A DNA stretch of 64,000 nt from Parasitella parasitica NRRL 2501 (Eukaryota; Fungi; Mucoromycota). The stretch's first letter is position 1. Each line of letters starts with the position of its first letter. Of this stretch, positions 2,596 through 13,200 are shown piece after piece. A program made the position numbers and the translations under genes. The DNA is taken from contig MU619261.1 in assembly GCA_025201805.1 (NCBI GenBank), forward strand, positions 65,593 through 129,592. The letters are read 5' to 3'. The notes under the pieces were generated by a model, which was not told where the DNA came from, ran no database searches, and was given only the letters and a program-made list of their open reading frames with translations.

Positions 2596-3113
2596 CTGTA
2601 TATACCAACACACTCATGTTTCGCCAGCGAAAAATGAGCATATGTTATTTCATTGTTTACAATTGAATATCATATACTACCAACACATATATTTTCTTTC
2701 TCCTTTTTCTTTTGCTTCTCCCCAACAACTTTCTATATTGTTTATGATTTTTTTTCCGGCTTTCCCTTTCCCTCCCTAGAGAGCTACGCAGCACATTAAC
2801 AAAACCCAAAAAAAAATTACACATGTAAGAGCTCTTTTTTTTTTTTTTTTTTTTTTTCACGAAAAGAGACGCTATATTCATATGACATTAATTTAATACT
2901 ATACTACATTCGTTTTGATTTTTTTTTTCTTTTTTTTATTTACACCGTATTCATATAAAATAGCGTGCTTATTTTATAACATAATAGTATCATGGATCAT
3001 CAATTCTCGGTAATTTTGGCATCGTAAAGTTAGATTCAATTAAAATCATCCCGATATTAAACATAGTGGGTGTGTGCTCCCTTTTTTTTTCCTTTTTTTG
3101 CCTGTTATTACAA

Positions 3114-6100
3114 ATGATCATGATTGGGAGGTATTTAGTAATCATTACACTCAGTATACTCTCCCTGAATTCTGTACAATGCCATATTCAGCACTATAAA
3201 CGTAAAGAAGACTTGACTGAGTTCACTCTAGCCTCATGTGGTATAACGCCAACAATGCCCAAGAAAAGACAGCGCATTGCATTTATCTCGCATGAATCTG
3301 CTATCGCCACTTTTTTTCATAACCCAGAACAAGGCTCACGGGATGCTGCAAATCTTGTTGATGTCGACGTAGAGTGGAACCACTACTTGGCCAAATCAGA
3401 ATCCAAGATGGCACAAGATATTCATGATGCAGTCAACAAGGTAGGCCCAATTGCTTGCTGCTACTGCTGCTACCATTGTTGTATCGATCAAAATTTAACA
3501 TTGAAGCAGGGGATCGATGGTATTATTACCTCTATACCGAACGATTCAGTGTTTCAAGCTGTCGAATATGCAGTAGCAAAAAATATACCAGTCATTGTAT
3601 TTAATACAGGCCTTGATTATGCCAGACAGCTGGGCTTGACTCGAGTCTTGCAAGATGATGTTGAAGCGGGGAATATGCTGGGTGAAGAGCTATACAATGC
3701 TAATTTCTCAAAGCCATTAGCAGTGCAACTATCATCCCTTGACGACTACACAAGCAAGCGCAGAAGACTAGGCATTGAGCAGGCCATAGGCTATAGTCCT
3801 ACCGTGTTAAAGATATACGAAGCATCGAATATGAGTGCAGTGAACAGACCAGTGCAGCTTGTGCGCGATGCTTTTTTATCAAACGCAGGTGCGTATGACT
3901 CGATTATTTCGCTGGGAGGATCAGTAAGTTCAAGGGGTCTGTGCAAATTCATGCTTGGGCTGCATACTAATACTCCCAGATTTACGACTTAGTCATGCGC
4001 AGATATTGTTGCAGCTTCAGTTTTAAGCCTGAAACGTGATTCTGCTTCACTAAATATAGCATCCGCTTTTTTCGATGTAGGTGGAGTGAATGTATCTGCG
4101 CTGTTTCGATTGGAAAGGAATACCTTTGCAGTGACACAACTGCCTTATTATCAGACTGCTTTGCCCGTATTCTACATATACTTGAGAGTAAGATGTGAAC
4201 GTAAATACAAATGATGAGCTTATATAGACTCTGAAAAAAAAACACTAGCTGCTGACTGGGCAAGATGTATATAGAAACCAAACCATCAAGACAGGCCCTA
4301 ATCTCGTCACCAATGCAACACTATCCTACTTTATGCAGAACGAAGCAAACTCGCTGATGTCCATCAATGACAAATCGGGGTCTATAGGCGCACTTGTTCC
4401 ACATACCCGAGGAGACACATATAATGCAGCTATGATGGCTGGCGTTACGAATCTTGCTCAAAAACTAAACTGGACAGTATACAATCCTAAAGAGGTATTT
4501 AAGTCCATGCTGTTTGCATACCAAGATAGCAGCTTACTAAAACGAAATGAGCGAGCAGGAAGGCTTGTTGGTGTCTGCTGAAAAAAATAAAAAAAACATC
4601 GACTTTTTCGTTAATAAGGGCGTGGACGGCATACTGGTGCAATCCAGTAGCAATCAGGTCTTGGAATATGCCAATAATGCAGTCGCCAAAGCCAAGAATG
4701 CAGTGGGCGTTGTGGCATTGGGTTCATTTTTCGAAAAACACAATACATCATACTCGTAATGTAGTTGGAGAATACAACCACGTCAAGCTGTAAAACTGAT
4801 ATACTTCTTTTTTTTTTTTTTTGTATTGCTTGTACAGACATCTGTCCAATGTAGCGCTTGATATGGTAGATTTATCGAAATCTATTGCCAACAAGATAGC
4901 TGCTGATGGCAAGACCAGGCCTGTCTGCATTACAGAACGATCTACTCAAGTGGCAAGTCCATTTTGTCATTATTTTTACGAAGCTTATCAGCAACTGCAG
5001 GGCAACAGTGCTGCGGCGACGGCAGACCAAGTGGTGAAATCTGTCAACGTCTCCTATCCTGGCGCTATGGAGAACGAGTTTATGACAATCATTCAAAGAC
5101 TATATGAAGACGATTCTTACGAACCCGATAGCTTCGTTACTTTTTCAGAATATGTGTTTACAATTATCAATAGTGTAAGCTTATGCCCAAGGCTTATTAC
5201 GAAGTTTACTAACTAGGTTATTAGCGAATTTTGAAAGGATACTTGGACAACAACACCATGTCTGTCTACACAGCAGGCGAATTATTCGACCAGAACCAAG
5301 CCTATCTAGAAGGTCGGGTCAAAGGGTTATGGGCTACCAACATGTTCTCAGTTGGCTTCATGTCATTACTTCATATAGTATTCAACAAAATGATAGATTT
5401 TCCTTCTTGGGAAGGTGCATTGATTTCAACACCATACATAAAAAATATCTGCGATCCAGGAACATATCATTCCAATTTCACAACTACTGCATACTGCCAA
5501 GACTCCGATGGCCAGATTCAAAAATCAATTCAATGTATACAATGCCCTGAAAATATGTACACTGACTTGCCTGACCAAGATCAATGCAAAGCATGTGCAT
5601 CTGGTTATTTTTCATTACCTGGATCATTATCATGTACCTCTTGCTATGATAAATCTGATAACATCACCATTAGCGCCATCAACAATAGCTGCTTGGCGTT
5701 CCTTGGTAATCAGTCTGCTGAAAAACGTCAATTATTCATGTCAATTTTTATACCTATTGGGGTTGTACTAATCTTGCTTGCTGCTGGATTGTTATTTCGA
5801 TACGCAAGAAAACACTGGTTGATACAGCGTACTTTGGGCGGTGATAAGGATTGGCTACTCTCCTTTAACGAGCTGGTCAAGCCGCCAATCCACAGGCTAG
5901 AAAGCAATGATGATGGAGATAAAACTACTCAGAATACACCATTATGGAGACCGAGAGAAACAAGTACTCCTGTCATGGCTGCAAATGATTGGAATTCTTT
6001 TCACAAAGTAGGGGAAGGAGGCACTACTGCTCGAAAAGCAAATAGTGCATGTTACAGTAAAGAAGTTGAAAGAACAATAGCATCTCCATACAATGGATCA

Positions 6101-9100
6101 CGATCTGACACTGATCTACATGTCAATGAGACCCACCGTCATCAAGGAGCAAGGGACGAAGGAGGAGAAAGAAGACGAGATGATGGAGGAGTAATGTCGG
6201 GAGGGGGAGAAGCTGCAGAGGAAGGGGTATTCGGATTAAATGCATTGTCTTTATCGTCTGCAGCTGCTGCAACAGGCCTAGTAGGAGGATCATTAGTCAC
6301 TCATAGCAGCAGTAATCGAAAATCAGGAGCAACTACGGCAACGTTAGTAGGAACCCATGGTAGAGTAGACGATAAATCGATGGGCGTAAAGCCGGAATTT
6401 TTACACGCCCTTGGATTCCAGTAGGTTTCTCTACATTGAAATGTAATCTTTTTCTTTTTTTTTCTTTTTTTTACCCACCTTTATGCTTTTATAGTCGAAA
6501 CCTACCGGTCTATATCAAACAGATTGGTCATAAGAAAGTGCGTATAGACAGCAATTTACGTAAAGAAGTGTCGTTGATAAAAAATGCAAGACATCCAAAG
6601 CTAATCGAGTTCGTTGGGCTGATATTGGAGCCTCAACGCACATGTATTGTTGAAGGTAGCAGTTTTTCTTTTTTTGGTAACAAGGCGATGCTGTCTTACC
6701 ACTTTATTTATCTAGAACACTGTTCAAAGGGGTCTTTGGCGGATGTATTGGCCAACCCTGATATCGACCTAGCTTGGATATTCCGATTTGCTTTGATTAA
6801 CGACTTAATTAGTGGCATGTTTTAATCCCTATGTATAAAATCTCCCTAGCAAATTCTTATCATTAACTTTCATAGGGATGAGGTTTTTGCATCGATCGAA
6901 GTTTCAATACCACGGATGCCTAACTTCAGATTGCTGCATGGTCACTGGTAGATGGGAATTGAAGATTTCAAATTATGGCCTTAGGCAGCTTCGACATTCG
7001 CAGGTTGTCGACACAATAGGTTGCTCTCCAACCACATCTAAAAGAAACAATAGTCTATTCCTAAAAGATCCGTCATTGACTGATGAAAATCCTCGTGTGT
7101 TACGATCAACCGAGACGCTTTTATGGCTTGCTCCTGAATCTATAGCCACAACGCTACCAAACACCTATTTAACATATCCAAGCAAACAAGCTGATGTATA
7201 CAGGTACATATTAATGATACTTTTTTTTTGTGTTTATATCATGTAGTAAATCTATCTAAACACAATTTCAAAGTGCTGGCATTATTATAAATGAAATCTT
7301 GACAAGGGAGAAGCCTTATGCAGACAGACATCTATGTCCGGAAGATATCTTTCAAGACGTCTGTGCTATCGATCTTAGGCCTCGTATGCAGCCACCAGAC
7401 AAAGATGACTTTACGCAAGGGATGAATTCTATTGTTTCCGATTGTTTACAAACGAATCCATTCACTCGTCCAACATTTGCATCGATAGAGGTAACATATA
7501 AGCTCATCTTTTATTTCATCTGACATTCTAATAAAAAAATACGATTTAGACCCGAGTAGAGGAGCTAGATCCTTATTTCTGTGGCTCGGATTCCATGATT
7601 GATAACATGGCAGTTTTGGTATGTATACTCAGTACCTCTGTTTCCGATTCATGATTAATATTATATATATATATACATATATACATATATGTAGCTAGAG
7701 GAATATGCAAACAATATGGAGATTTTGGTGAAAAAACGCACATCGAATCTGCAGCAGAGAACACTCGAGTTGGAAGAAGAAAGGGCAAGAACAGAGACAT
7801 TATTAAAAGGTACTTTTCTGAATCAGAAGGATATGCTGATACATTATCTAATAACTTATCACAGATCTGAAATCTGCAAAGGAAGTGGCTGAAGCTGCTG
7901 CCGCATCAAAGCAAACCTTTCTAGCTAACATGTCGCATGAGATTCGAACCCCCATGAATGCGGTTATTGGCATGTCGAGAAGTTTAATGGATAGCTTAAT
8001 GGAAGGCGACTTCCATCCTGATCTTTACGATTGTGCTGAGACTATAGAGTCATCAGGTATTTATATATCACATGTGTTTGTTTTGAGCATAAAAGATGCT
8101 AAATTGTTACTAAAACGTCTATTGAAGGTAATCATTTAATGGCTCTGATCGACGATATTTTGGATTATTCAAAGATCGAATCTGGAAAATTGACACTGGA
8201 AAATAGCAACTTGGATTTAGTAAGTACATATTGCCAATAATTCAAGTGCACATATGTAAATTAACTCTTTGTCATTGATACAGACTTATGCCATTGAAAG
8301 CGCCATCAAGTTGATTTCAAATAGCTATATTAGTAAAGGTCTAGTACTATGGTATACGATCACTCCTGAATTGCCCACACATGTATTGGGAGACCTTGTG
8401 CGATTACGGCAAATCCTTTTGAACTTGTAAGTCCAGAGGGCAGCAAATGTAACGAGTACTCATTCATAATGTAATAGACTTTCAAATGCCTTTAAATTTA
8501 CAAAAGAGGGTTATGTTTGCATATCGGTTATGCCTTACCATAACAGCAGCATCAATCATCCTGATGAAAGCACTGACGTTCCTGACGTCTCAACGCCTCT
8601 TGGAATCAGCCCGAACTTTAGAGATGATAATTTTGACCGTGAAAGTTTGGTCACCTATTTGTTTTCTGTGAAAGATACCGGCATGGGTATACCTTCAGAG
8701 AAAACAAACAAGCTATTTAAATCATTTTCACAAGTGGATGCTTCGACAACTCGCAATTTTGGAGGAACGGGTATGCAAACGCGATATGTTCGTACTAACC
8801 CGTCAGACTAAACTTTGCACATCAGGGCTTGGTTTGGCCATCAGTAAAAAGCTCTGTAAAATCATGGGAGGCGACATGTGGGTGGAATCAGAGGTTGGAA
8901 AGGGATCTACCTTCTTTTTCAAGATTGATTTGCAAAAACAAGCCGAATCTCTTACTTACAGCAACGAAAACCGTTTGCTTGAATTATCAGCTGCATGTCC
9001 TCGACCTCTGTTAATAGCAGAAAAAGAGACCATTAGGCTGAAATGGAATTCAATATTAAATAACTTTGGCATACGAAGCCAGACTATTATGGCTATCGAT

Positions 9101-10147
9101 GAAGCAGTGGAGCTCTTTTCAAATGCTCAGGCTCACATGGCTCATGTAGACTTCTCAATTATTATCATAGACGTGGATTTTATTACAGAAAACACGCAAA
9201 TTAATAGCACAGGTGTATTGGAAATTTTGAAGACTTGCCACAGTCTTATCAGACAAATACCAATTTTATGCGTTATTGATAATCGATTGAAAAGGCCAGA
9301 CTCTAAACAGACAGGGCAAGAAAAAGCAGAAAATTTATCCTCATCTTGCATTCAACATCCAGTCGGGTCTTTTGATCCAGTCCCTACACCCACTGAAGAA
9401 AAGTCTGATCCACTTGCCACTGATACTGCTCACACGCACCATCATTTAGCAACTGCAAACTTGGAAATGACTGAATTAGAAACGTGTCAACATGCAATTA
9501 TTACGAAACCCTTCAAAAATTCAAGACTCATTAGCATCATGCACGAGTTGTTAAATTGCGAAAAATCGCCTACAACCAAAAAACGACGACCGAACAATGC
9601 AATTCGCCGTGGCAGTGTCCAACATAAAGCCCTATCGACCTCATCATCCACTAATAATAGTCGACGAGCTAGTAGCAATCATGAAGGCACAGCGCCAGAA
9701 GAAACGACTAGCTCAATGAAATCAGAATCCTCGGACAATTTGGCCAATATAAAGACTCTTGTCGTCGATGATAACCCTGTCAATCTTAAGGTACTATCTA
9801 GAATGCTGACACAAATGGGCATCCAATCCCAATCTGCGAACAATGGCCGAGAAGCATTCGATATAGTATCCAAAGAGCATTTTGATCTAGTCTTTATGGA
9901 TATCTGGATGCCTGAAATGAACGGACTAGAAGCAGCGGAGAAGATCCGCAAAGAAGTAGCTACTTCAGAAACCCATCCATATATCATTGCATTGACAGCC
10001 TGTGTCATGCCAGGAGATAGAGAGAAATGTATCCAAGCAGGAATGAACGGGTATGTGAGTAAGCCTATACGGAAGCAGGAATTGGAGGCTTCTATTCATA
10101 CCTTTACGCAAACTGTAACAAGCACATCATCATCATCGCCCCAGTAG
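3114..10147 (+). CDS. Multi-exon transmembrane hybrid histidine kinase: signal peptide, 2x periplasmic-binding-protein-like domains, Cys-rich repeats, TM, guanylyl-cyclase-type pseudokinase, coiled coil, HisKA, HATPase_c, receiver
   Basis: Consecutive + strand ORFs joined by GT..AG introns. Motifs: [15 protein letters not shown] (PBP); CPENMY..CKACASG (Cys-rich); [24 protein letters not shown]; [22 protein letters not shown] (kinase-like); [14 protein letters not shown] (H-box); [23 protein letters not shown] (G/F boxes); [24 protein letters not shown] (REC). Confidence 0.88.
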
Positions 10148-10254: not shown

Positions 10255-13200
10255 ATGACATACTCTCCATTCAAATTAGAATCGACTCTACAAAATCACG
10301 AGCAAGATGTAAAATTTTAATGAAAATCCCCCCCCCTCCTCTTCCCTAAAACCCCTCTCATAACATTTATTTGTCTGTAGGTCAGAGCAGTGGCCGCTAT
10401 GTCAAATGATGTGATAATTTCAGCTGCTCGTGACAAGACTGTGCGCTCTTGGACTCGCATTGGCCCAAACACCTTTTCTCCTGACAAAGTCTACTTGGGC
10501 CACGGCCATTTTGTAAATGCATTGGCACTGATCAAGCCAAACCAAGATTACCCTGAAGGTTTGTTTCTGTGTTGATTGTGCCCGACTGACATGGTAACCC
10601 ACCACTGACACATCACTGACACATATTTTTATGCAGGGCTGATTGTATCTGGTGGGTCGGATAAAGTCGTCTATGTACACGATCCTAGTCGTCCTGAAAA
10701 CCCAAAATATAAGCTCATTGGACATAGTGAAACCGTAAGCGCACTAGCGACAACTCCTTCAGGTCATATTGTTTCCGGATCTTGGGACAAGTAAGTTTGT
10801 AATATTTGTTCAGCAGAGGAAATACCAATGCATGACGAATAGTAAAGCAATCGTGTGGAAAGGGTTTCAACAAGCATATGCGCTTGAAGGCCATTCTGCC
10901 TCTGTTTTGGGCATTCTGCCTATTGAAGACGATTTGATCTTGACAGGTTTGCTAGAATTGGCTAAACACATCCCCAGGAAAATTGCTCAAGTACCTTTTC
11001 CCGTTAAATAATAGCTTCCGCTGATAAATCAATTCGTTTGTGGAGAAATGGAAAACTGGTTCGTGTGTATCAAGGCCACACAGATGTTGTCAGAGGGCTT
11101 GCTTTAGTCCCTGGTATCGGATTTGTATCATGCTCCAACGACGGGTAAGTGTAGGGTTCAAAAAACGCACAACATTTGACACTGAAATATAGCCTTACAG
11201 AACTTTGAGAGTGTGGACATTGGAAGGAGAGTGCGTCCAACAGTTGTACGGCCACACATCGTTTGTTTACACTGTCGATGTTTTGAGCACAGGTGAATTT
11301 GTATCCTCAGGCGAAGACCGAACAGTTCGTATTTGGAAGGAAGGACAGAATATTCAAACTCTTCAGCAACCATGTATTTCAGTGTGGACAGTTGCTGCAT
11401 TACCAAACAACGATATTGCTATTGGAGGTAGCGATGCTGCTGTTCGAATTTTCACTCGTGAAACTGAGCGCATGGCTGCAGCAGAAGCGCAAAAGGAATT
11501 TGACGAATTGCTAGCAAGCCAGATGATTCCCTCGTAAGTACCAAGTGCTCTTGACACGGCATCGACTGATATAATAGCACAGCAATCAAATCGGCGATGT
11601 AAAGAAGGATAAGCTGCCTGGACCTGAGGCTTTACAAGCAGCTGGTAAGCAGGAAGGCCAAGTCATTATGGTTAATATGGGTGCTGCTGTAGAAGCCCAT
11701 CAATGGAATGCTCAAGATCAGAGCTGGAAAAAGATTGGCGAGGTAGTTGGCGGTAATGAATCAAAAGCAGTATTTGAAGGAAAAGAATACGACTATGTTT
11801 TTGACATTGACATTGGCGCTGGCCCCAATGGCAACCTCAAACTACCATACAATGTTTCAGGTTAGTCTCTAGTTAAAAAATATTACTCTGCAGGCGTAAC
11901 TCACATTATATTTTCACTTTTGATATAGAAAACCCATACGATGCTGCACAAAAATTCTTGATGAAAAACGGCCTCGAGCAATTTTTCTTGGATCAAGTAG
12001 CCGATTTCATCATTAAAAATGCAGAGGGTGTTAATTTAGGTAGCGGATATCAAGACCCTTTCACCGGACAAAGTAGATACACTCCTCAGTCAAATCAGCC
12101 TACTATCGGCCAAGCTTACATGGACCCCTTTACTGGTAGTGGGTCGTATCGTCCTGCCACTATCAATCCTACATCTTCACTAGGTTCTTCCACTTATTCC
12201 GATCCATTCACTGGCAGTGGCTCTTACAAACCCGGCGGAAGCGTGTCTGCCACCCCTACAGCAACATCACCATCACTAAAGCAAGCCAATGTATTGCCTA
12301 TTGTAAGTGCTTTGCTCAAAGTAATTTTAATCTGATCGTAACAATAACGCCTCACTCCCCCACCCCCCTCCCACCCGCTCCAGAAATCTTATTTAACCTT
12401 GAAGCAAGCTAATCCTGATGCCGTTGTAAACAAGATCCGCTCTCTCAACAAAGAAATTTCCGCCGAAATCAAACTTTCCGAGGAAGAACTTGAATCTTTG
12501 ACCTCCTCGGCTTTATTTCTGAAGGATCCAATGGCTTCAGGGATGACTGCCGCAAATTATGGTTCTGGTTTACTAGCTCTTATCAAGATGGCCAATGAAT
12601 GGCCTCAAGAAAAGCGATTCCCAGCACTTGATTTAATACGTCTATTTGCACTTTATGCACCTGAAAACTTGGCAGCTGCTGTATCTGAAAGAAATATTCC
12701 TGCTCTCCTGATGAAAGCTGGCGGTTTATCTGCAGATGATGTTGCACCCTTTAACGAGACAAATGCCATGTTGGCTTACCGTGGTTTAGCTAATCTTTTC
12801 AACCAAGAAGCAGGCCGTCAACTGATTTATGAGAGACGTAACATTGTTGCTGATATGATGTCGGTTGAAATTACTGGCAAATTCAAGGGCAAGAATACTC
12901 GCTTAGCACAGAGTACATTGGCAGTGAACTTTGCCGTTCTACTAACTAGCAAAAAGGAAGGAGAAGTTGAGCTTGGGTTGACTGGAACTTTGGTGGAATT
13001 GCTGAAGGATGAACAAGACGATGAAAATTTGTATAGATTTGTCATGGCCTTTGGAAGCTTAGTAAGTTGTTTGTTGTTTTTGTAACTAGCAAAAATTTAG
13101 AACGTTTTCTGCTGAATAGGTTTGTCAATCAAGCGCTTGTCGTGAAGTTGCAAATATTATGGAGGCCAAGACAGAAATTGGACGCATCCAATCGCAAAAA

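Follow-up and report, generated by a model that had tools for sequence, protein, structure and literature searches.

A predicted group XVI hybrid histidine kinase of Parasitella parasitica that joins a sugar-binder-like ectodomain to a pseudokinase of the receptor guanylyl cyclase type

Gene structure and domain order

We analyzed a 64,000-nt stretch of the genome of the fungus Parasitella parasitica NRRL 2501 (assembly GCA_025201805.1, contig MU619261.1, positions 65,593 to 129,592 of the forward strand), hereafter the window, in which positions are counted from its first letter. Between 3114 and 10147 on the + strand lies one gene of 18 exons and 17 introns, as determined by a check of splice sites and phase. 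Its predicted product, which we assign to the fungal hybrid histidine-kinase group XVI, carries in order a signal peptide, two periplasmic binding protein (PBP) domains, a Cys-rich region, a transmembrane (TM) helix, a pseudokinase, a signaling helix, HisKA, HATPase_c, a degenerate receiver and an intact receiver (Table 1). An earlier note on this DNA, made from the letters alone, had listed these elements and read them as the chassis of a receptor guanylyl cyclase (rGC) wired to a two-component output; Pfam searches by exon and motif location found every one of them where the note had placed it on this strand.

By phase arithmetic, the coding sequence comprises 5943 nt and 1980 aa, with its sole stop at 10145-10147 and none internal. 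Sixteen open reading frames (ORFs) without stops are joined on the + strand of 3114-10147 by short introns with fungal-type ends, 50-82 nt in size, 16 of them GT-AG and one (6815-6875) GC-AG. Intron 3441-3509 (69 nt) lies in frame within the first long ORF; the 23 residues that it encodes are absent from orthologs, and one ortholog model retains them as a low-confidence loop. For the GC donor at 6815, each of the GT alternatives alters one codon. The presence of a GC-AG intron in the pseudokinase may be one reason why gene callers break or truncate genes of this family there.

The Mucor bainieri ortholog P0129 (1976 aa) is colinear with 3135-10099 of the window, and exons 12-18 of our gene model are identical to the public model P0253. 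Such colinear full-length ortholog models support the prediction that the ectodomain/pseudokinase and histidine-kinase parts belong to one gene. Every search reported here used either single exons of this gene or database orthologs as stand-ins for the whole protein.

A pseudokinase of the receptor guanylyl cyclase type

As had been noted from the letters, the kinase-homology domain reads HGC in place of HRD and NYG in place of DFG. The family consensus at the second motif is DYG, and in this gene the catalytic-loop Asn is also changed to Cys. No glycine-rich loop was recognizable in the domain.

When we searched kinase exon 10 of this gene against 177,635 distinct PDB sequences, it matched solely GC-A and GC-C; the C-lobe exon by itself had no significant PDB match. 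Ortholog P0125 matched GC-A in the PDB with an E value of 5e-39 (137 bits), from the beta-3 strand to the E-x-Y-A-N-N...E-R-T part of the helix, followed by GC-C at 74 bits and by RIPK1, MLKL, LIMK and ABL at no more than 62 bits. Exons 9, 10, 11 and 13 gave a colinear BLASTP alignment to two animal rGCs, P0148 and P0149, and the rGC matches of exon 13 had E values of 2e-5 to 8e-5. With the pseudokinase and helix of ortholog P0114 as the query against 5.8 billion proteins, Mucorales came first, then two animal rGCs (E 6e-37 and 2e-29), and then, after a gap, matches from 6e-11.

The ranking was the same without the helix: against a hidden Markov model (HMM) of the fungal domain alone, the rGCs scored 182 and 157 bits, and no other kinase exceeded 85 bits per domain. 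We also inferred a maximum-likelihood (ML) tree from 25 fungal domains, two rGCs and, as outgroup, seven other kinases, in which the fungal domains and the rGCs were joined at 100/99 support; a grouping of the fungal domain with ordinary kinases was not seen. Identity to the rGCs is about 30% over some 310-350 residues. Taken together, the sequence comparisons support an assignment specifically to the rGC type for the pseudokinase together with the N-terminal half of the helix, and the rGC chassis proposed in the earlier note has held up.

We looked for a cyclase-bearing sibling in the same genome. Guanylate_cyc has just two matches there, both in Cyr1-type adenylate cyclases on other contigs, and these candidates were rejected for that reason. 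As a separate observation, the two are paralogous genes on contigs C26 and C22, each with RA, LRR, PP2C and cyclase domains, and one of them carries a polyglutamine run of ~70 residues.

The signaling helix and its junction

The helix quoted in the note is correct once intron 7619-7694 is removed. Within it, KRT at 7734-7742 occupies the position of the ERT signature; the R and T are invariant across the family and the rGCs, and the E is a K in this gene. The helix exon has a weak Pfam match (E 0.06) to the C-terminal end of HNOBA, a coiled coil that precedes cyclase domains, and a phmmer search of the 38-aa helix exon against the PDB returned designed coiled coils only. In five orthologs, YAN and the H-box lie exactly 58 residues apart, and a count by eye in the window translation also gave 58; such a fixed spacing fits a rigid coiled coil with a register that matters. 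In the AlphaFold model of ortholog P0133 (mean predicted local distance difference test score, pLDDT, of 74), a kinase fold is followed by a helix of ~90 residues that runs into the DHp hairpin, and then by the ATPase, a receiver-like fold and a receiver.

The signaling helix (S-helix) is common to histidine kinases and rGCs and has been defined as a coiled coil of ~40 residues with a central E-R-T signature, located between two signaling domains (PMC1592074). Its occurrence after a kinase domain was stated for animal rGCs only (Anantharaman, Balaji, Aravind 2006; PMC1592074). The helix described here is placed between a pseudokinase and a DHp domain, aligns to the GC-A helix and is modeled as a helix, and the group XVI family is an exception to the statement that restricts the order of kinase domain and then S-helix to animal rGCs.

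Similarity to the cyclase type stops at ...TLL, and the next ~25 residues up to the H-box form a generic pre-H-box helix, which we also found in six other histidine kinases of this genome, where the upstream cyclase-type part is absent. This junction coincides with the boundary of exons 13 and 14 (intron 7810-7864), and the paralog in the same genome has the same intron (about 7310-7365 of the C182 piece). Because there are 17 introns in 7 kb, the coincidence is suggestive only; a conserved intron at the junction hints at a possible assembly at the level of exons. A domain swap at the signaling helix, as the note had envisaged, fits these data.

Histidine kinase output

A search by exon with Pfam found no match in the gene to a cyclase domain (PF00211) after the helix. 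In its place, as had been read from the sequence, come a HisKA and a HATPase_c domain followed by two receivers, the first of them degenerate (hhalign) and the second intact (Pfam). None of the H, N, G1, F and G2 boxes is disrupted, nor are DD, D, T and K of the intact receiver, which supports the prediction that the output is a complete hybrid histidine kinase. Foldseek matched the cytosolic part to the kinases ShkA, GacS, RetS and HK853.

The degenerate receiver reads AEKE in place of the acidic DD pair and retains the Asp column (9158-9181) and Lys-Pro (9500-9553). Family profiles of the interval between the ATPase and the last receiver aligned end to end with the true receiver in hhalign (probability 84%, E 7e-6), and in the P0133 model this interval adopts a (beta-alpha)5-like fold at a pLDDT of 85-90. 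The genome has one Ypd1-like histidine phosphotransfer (HPt) gene, on contig C44.

Ectodomain, stalk and membrane helix

Pfam matched Peripla_BP_4 by exon at 3114-3989 with an E value of 5e-10, over the curated cut-off. The family profiles of the first and second PBP domains aligned with each other in hhalign at a probability of 97% (E 9e-11), indicating that the two are homologous modules. The AlphaFold model of ortholog P0002 (mean pLDDT 77, pTM 0.73) contains two alpha/beta binder modules, the second of them at a pLDDT of about 90, a beta-rich Cys domain and a TM helix. PF01094 (ANF_receptor) was not matched by the ectodomain, for which Pfam gave Peripla_BP_4 and Peripla_BP_1 instead.

The nearest solved structure to the ectodomain is 4RU1, both by sequence (E 3e-7 with P0002) and by Foldseek (TM 0.85), and 4RU1 is a verified myo-inositol binder (PMC10747050). 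The structural and sequence matches that follow are binders of glucose, xylose, galactose and ribose, as well as XylFII, which signals to the kinase LytS. At a weak guess, the ligand may be a monosaccharide, inositol or a similar polyol. Within the Parasitella genome, Peripla_BP_4 was found in only two genes, the group XVI paralogs. Among the matches, the nearest relatives of the ectodomain outside the fungi come from diatoms, in proteins that combine two Peripla_BP_4 domains with 7tm_3, and bacterial binders rank lower. The protein described here has one TM helix and no 7tm_3 domain; the 7tm_3 matches of this genome are on other contigs.

The stalk gave weak Pfam matches to VSP and Ephrin_rec_like over 5225-6421. 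Among relatives, PF07699 is precomputed for many orthologs, NCD3G matches P0101 weakly, and the P0002 model is beta-rich at residues 642-720. The juxtamembrane motif, in the form W-[LQ]-L-[SD], was present in 17/20 family members. The linker that follows WLLSFNEL, up to 6420, is poorly conserved, and the equivalent linker of P0133 has a pLDDT of <50. Direct reading of the sequence, Pfam, hhalign and the ortholog models agree with the note on the signal peptide, the two sugar-type PBP domains, the Cys-rich region, the single TM helix and WLLSFNEL. Of its proposal of a single-pass receptor for a small molecule, possibly a sugar, the membrane topology and the PBP architecture stand, and the sugar itself remains a guess.

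Family membership and naming

Each of the 120 best-scoring database clusters belongs to Mucorales or Mortierellales, and most combine Peripla_BP_4, a kinase domain, HisKA, HATPase_c and a receiver in one protein. The paralog in the same genome (contig C182:1-10000, gene at about 3021-9815) has the same full layout. It shares 43-44% identity with our gene in the binder and pseudokinase exons, keeps DYG and has an additional intron within the H-box, beside a long T run.

Two hybrid histidine kinases of Mortierella elongata, MeHHK11 and MeHHK12, were labeled MS-HKII (Herivaux et al. 2017, PMC5285503 Text S1), a class later renamed group XVI and restricted to Mucoromycota (Kabbara et al. 2018, PMC6324907). 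According to Bourret et al. 2021 (PMC8510515), the kinases of group XVI contain TM regions and a Ser/Thr-kinase domain. The published MeHHK11/12 sequences show the same series of motifs from the ectodomain to the receiver, a kinship judged by motifs and not by direct alignment, and P0193 and P0238 of Linnemannia (= Mortierella) elongata are among the family matches. The gene in the window likewise encodes HisKA, HATPase_c and a C-terminal receiver, a kinase-like domain N-terminal to these and a TM helix. Judged from its sequence, it is a member of the already catalogued group XVI (MS-HKII), and since MeHHK11/12 belong to the family, the family is not new; the caution over novelty in the earlier note was justified. 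We had guessed from their N-termini that MS-HKI/II were cytosolic, an idea that we dropped on seeing the full MeHHK11/12 sequences.

Guanylyl cyclases and binding-protein domains are not mentioned in PMC5285503, PMC6324907 or PMC8510515. A literature search for fungal histidine kinases that carry a kinase-homology domain, or for an RGC kinase in Mucor, returned nothing relevant, and in the searchable literature we found no paper that discusses an rGC link, a sugar-type ectodomain or a function for group XVI. The rGC homology and the sugar-type ectodomain of this group therefore appear to have gone undiscussed so far.

Database pipelines label members "RGC/RGC protein kinase." We note that the UniProt automatic name "guanylate cyclase" for P0007, P0034, P0131 and P0132 is wrong, as no cyclase domain was found in P0007 and P0034 by a Pfam re-scan or in P0131 and P0132 by precomputed Pfam. 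The name appears to stem from the RGC-type pseudokinase.

Comparison with known systems

With MeHHK11/12 of group XVI, the gene shares the signal peptide, binding-protein ectodomain, Cys-rich stalk, TM helix, W-x-L-S motif, pseudokinase, helix, H-box context and receiver. It differs in length, with ~1980 aa in this Mucorales paralog compared to 2100-2800 aa in Mortierellales members, and in reading NYG where the family consensus is DYG.

Like the animal rGCs (GC-A/NPR1 and GC-C), the protein has a single membrane pass, an ectodomain of type-I binding-protein fold, an H-G-x pseudokinase and a cyclase-type helix. Unlike them, it has no class III cyclase, and the helix feeds a DHp/HATPase_c/receiver unit. 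Its ectodomain has two Peripla_BP_4 domains and a Cys-rich stalk rather than ANF_receptor, its helix is longer, and its pseudokinase is without a recognizable glycine-rich loop.

Among bacterial systems, XylFII-LytS resembles this protein in that a histidine kinase is informed of a small molecule through a binding-protein fold, and ChvE-VirA and LuxP-LuxQ are further cases of a binding protein paired with a histidine kinase. In such pairs, however, the binder is a separate protein. Sensors of the BvgS/EvgS type combine a tandem pair of flytrap domains with one TM helix, a kinase and a receiver in a single chain, but the binders of BvgS are of type II and its linker is a PAS domain. In none of these bacterial sensors does a eukaryotic pseudokinase separate the kinase from the membrane. 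The diatom receptors (Seminavis robusta P0060 and P0072; diatom P0157 and P0116) also place two sugar-type binder domains before the membrane, but they have seven TM helices (7tm_3, similar to class C G-protein-coupled receptors) and no kinase parts.

The order of DHp, ATPase, degenerate receiver and receiver recurs in ShkA of Caulobacter and in the plant cytokinin receptors, which have other sensors. ShkA, which also carries a pseudo-receiver ahead of its receiver, is the best Foldseek match of the cytosolic part, aligned over 569 columns. Regulation of ShkA by cyclic di-GMP is specific to that protein, and nothing in the group XVI gene points to it.

Proposed mechanism

We consider it very likely that this single gene encodes a single-pass, probably dimeric, cell-surface receptor of group XVI, and we propose that it works by a relay of the following kind. 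Outside the cell, the tandem sugar-type Venus-flytrap domains, held on the Cys-rich stalk, would take up a small polar ligand. The ligand would make the two modules close or change their orientation, and this movement would be transmitted through the stalk and the TM helix to a dimer of the catalytically dead pseudokinase, and from there to the rigid coiled-coil signaling helix of fixed length. In animal cyclases, this helix ends on the cyclase domain; here it would enter helix 1 of DHp and set the rate of autophosphorylation on the His of SHEIRTP. Phosphate would then pass to the Asp of the C-terminal receiver and on to the Ypd1-like HPt protein and response regulators. The degenerate receiver is probably a regulatory or docking module, which, placed as in ShkA, may gate the transfer. 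The steps of this scheme draw on established knowledge of rGCs, S-helices and phosphorelays, by which we infer dimerization, the direction of regulation and the downstream pathway, in addition to the ligand class.

Several points weigh against the proposed receptor. The gene model rests on genomic sequence and database models rather than transcripts, and it requires a GC donor for one intron (6815-6875). The public annotation of Parasitella parasitica divides the locus into at least two models, P0001 and P0253. The signature of the helix reads KRT rather than ERT. The AlphaFold models are of ortholog monomers, in which the helix region has a pLDDT of 46-65, although low confidence is expected for a coiled coil modeled as a monomer. 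The ML tree holds only two rGCs and seven outgroup kinases, and because this sampling is thin and the outgroups were picked by similarity, the tree supports the rGC grouping without settling it. Finally, the ectodomain shares only ~20% identity with any of the solved sugar binders, so that the ligand class should be taken as a lead rather than a result.

To our knowledge, fungal histidine kinases are mostly cytosolic and their stimuli are unknown; the family would thus be a rare case of a fungal membrane histidine kinase with a recognizable ligand-binding ectodomain and a ligand class that can be put to the test. It is found in Mucorales, the order that includes agents of mucormycosis. As a practical matter, the gene is fragmented in public annotation, and several relatives carry a misleading cyclase name.

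Origin of the cassette and alternative explanations

How rGCs transmit a signal from bound ligand through the kinase-homology domain and helix is still debated. We tentatively suggest, as a possibility that we rate below an even chance, that the pseudokinase and helix are an old cassette independent of any one output, either ancestral to opisthokonts or exchanged, and that group XVI proteins are its sole known non-animal carriers, acting as inositol or sugar receptors that feed a His-Asp relay. As one cassette would then drive another output, it could be regarded as a general transmission unit. If so, the 2006 statement on the S-helix after a kinase domain would be overturned, and a genetically tractable system would be at hand for testing how the cassette passes its signal, to which the family lends itself through chimeras and simple phosphorylation read-outs.

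The same protein could have arisen by horizontal transfer of an animal or holozoan rGC part into an ancestor of Mucoromycota, where it joined a histidine kinase already present. Of the relatives returned, only those from Mucorales and Mortierellales and the animal rGCs carry the cassette; no sibling with a cyclase exists in this genome, and the junction lies at an exon boundary retained in the paralog. However, the identity of ~30% and the long branches give no sign of recent transfer, the two rGCs form no donor clade, and no supported node of the tree places the fungal group inside animals. The searches were word-limited, so absence from other lineages is not demonstrable. We regard such a transfer as improbable.

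The likeness to rGCs might instead be superficial, the product of an ordinary fungal kinase of tyrosine-kinase-like (TKL) type that has decayed next to an S-helix shared by many histidine kinases. An S-helix with an ERT core is indeed common upstream of histidine kinases (PMC1592074), the ESM Atlas look-alikes are generic kinases scoring under 0.9 and uninformative, and a purely structural comparison with Foldseek sets GC-A only slightly apart from RIPK1. The sequence scores to GC-A and other rGCs, however, are ~2 times those of any other kinase, including when the helix is excluded, and the ML tree places the fungal domains in a 100/99 clade with the rGCs. Moreover, the other histidine kinases of the genome lack both the stretch specific to rGCs ahead of the ERT core and the LE-E-x-x-x-T-x-x-LL that follows it, and database pipelines independently name members RGC/RGC kinases. 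A superficial resemblance is, in our judgment, very unlikely.

We also weighed whether the locus holds two or three genes, namely a sensor-pseudokinase that is secreted or held in the membrane and, separately, a hybrid histidine kinase of the cytosol starting from the internal Met in SMIDNMAVL. The public models, both exon-identical fragments of the gene, occupy separate portions of the locus: P0001 is a 445-aa ectodomain fragment, and the 726 aa of the kinase model P0253 begin with an internal Met of exon 12, within the helix. None of the public models returned covers the pseudokinase exons, and the ortholog models P0002, P0007, P0034 and P0066 end inside the pseudokinase. However, P0001 omits exon 3 and ends by read-through at intron 5175, and the truncated ortholog models likewise terminate at introns or by read-through. 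All exons are in phase across short canonical introns with no stop between them, and the proposed start of a separate kinase gene would lie 59 nt past the end of an exon of the pseudokinase, midway along a conserved helix. The length of the helix from the pseudokinase to the H-box is invariant, and dozens of independent fused models exist in both Mucorales and Mortierellales. A split into separate genes is thus highly unlikely.

Lastly, we give almost no credence to an active kinase-like domain that would make the protein a dual Ser/Thr (or Tyr) and His kinase, for although the beta-3 Lys, alpha-C Glu and APE motif are retained and one Mortierella member has HGD, in this gene Cys replaces both the catalytic Asp and the Asn of the HRD loop, Asn replaces the Asp of DFG, the glycine-rich loop is not recognizable, and the model has a single strand before helix C.

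Feature coordinates and neighboring genes

Table 1. Features of the predicted group XVI gene, with positions in the window
Feature	Position	Strand	Evidence
Coding region, exons 1-9	3114-3440, 3510-3923, 3993-4187, 4249-4494, 4559-4755, 4838-5174, 5225-6420, 6495-6655, 6716-6814	+	Splice/phase check
Coding region, exons 10-18	6876-7203, 7274-7490, 7550-7618, 7695-7809, 7865-8056, 8128-8219, 8284-8426, 8478-8770, 8826-10147	+	Splice/phase check
Signal peptide, 23 hydrophobic residues ending ...SVQC	3114-3182	+	Sequence reading; orthologs P0129 and P0002 begin alike
First type-I PBP domain (Peripla_BP_4 / CUT2 sugar type)	3273-4187	+	Pfam; introns 3441-3509 and 3924-3992 lie within
Second, divergent PBP domain (exons 4-7)	4381-5392	+	Weak Pfam match 4541-4756; hhalign
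Cys-rich, beta-rich stalk between sensors and membrane	5447-5707	+	Weak Pfam; model; conserved Cys columns
Single TM helix, 22 hydrophobic residues	5732-5797	+	Sequence; long helix in ortholog models
Juxtamembrane motif WLLSFNEL	5852-5875	+	Motif location; family comparison
Kinase-homology domain (pseudokinase), exons 8-11	6495-7490	+	Three colinear Pfam kinase pieces at 6376-7520
Kinase-homology domain residues	beta-3 Lys 6508-6528; HGC 6911-6919; NYG 6971-6979; APE 7130-7138	+	Motif location
GC-AG intron within the kinase-homology domain	6815-6875	+	Sole splice preserving the ortholog-conserved ...ISGM...
Cyclase-type signaling helix, exons 12-13, intron 7619-7694	7550-7809	+	GC-A alignment through ...ERT
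HisKA / DHp, exons 14-15	7865-8219	+	Pfam HisKA, E 3e-11 and 0.0018
H-box SHEIRTP	7933-7953	+	Motif location
HATPase_c, exons 16-18	8284-8932	+	Pfam on two exon pieces
HATPase_c boxes	N 8482-8502; G1 8674-8691; F 8713-8736; G2 8828-8845	+	Motif location
Degenerate receiver, long insert	9005-9553	+	hhalign; model
Intact receiver	9758-10105	+	Pfam Response_reg, E 1.5e-30
Intact receiver residues	DD pair; phospho-acceptor Asp 9890-9913; Thr; Lys 10052-10069	+	Motif location

The genes on either side are unrelated to the receptor. Upstream, at 2017-2595, lies a small Myb/SANT-like gene, and downstream, at 10390-13100 (start approximate), lies a WD40-PFU-PUL (Doa1/PLAA-like) gene with several introns.

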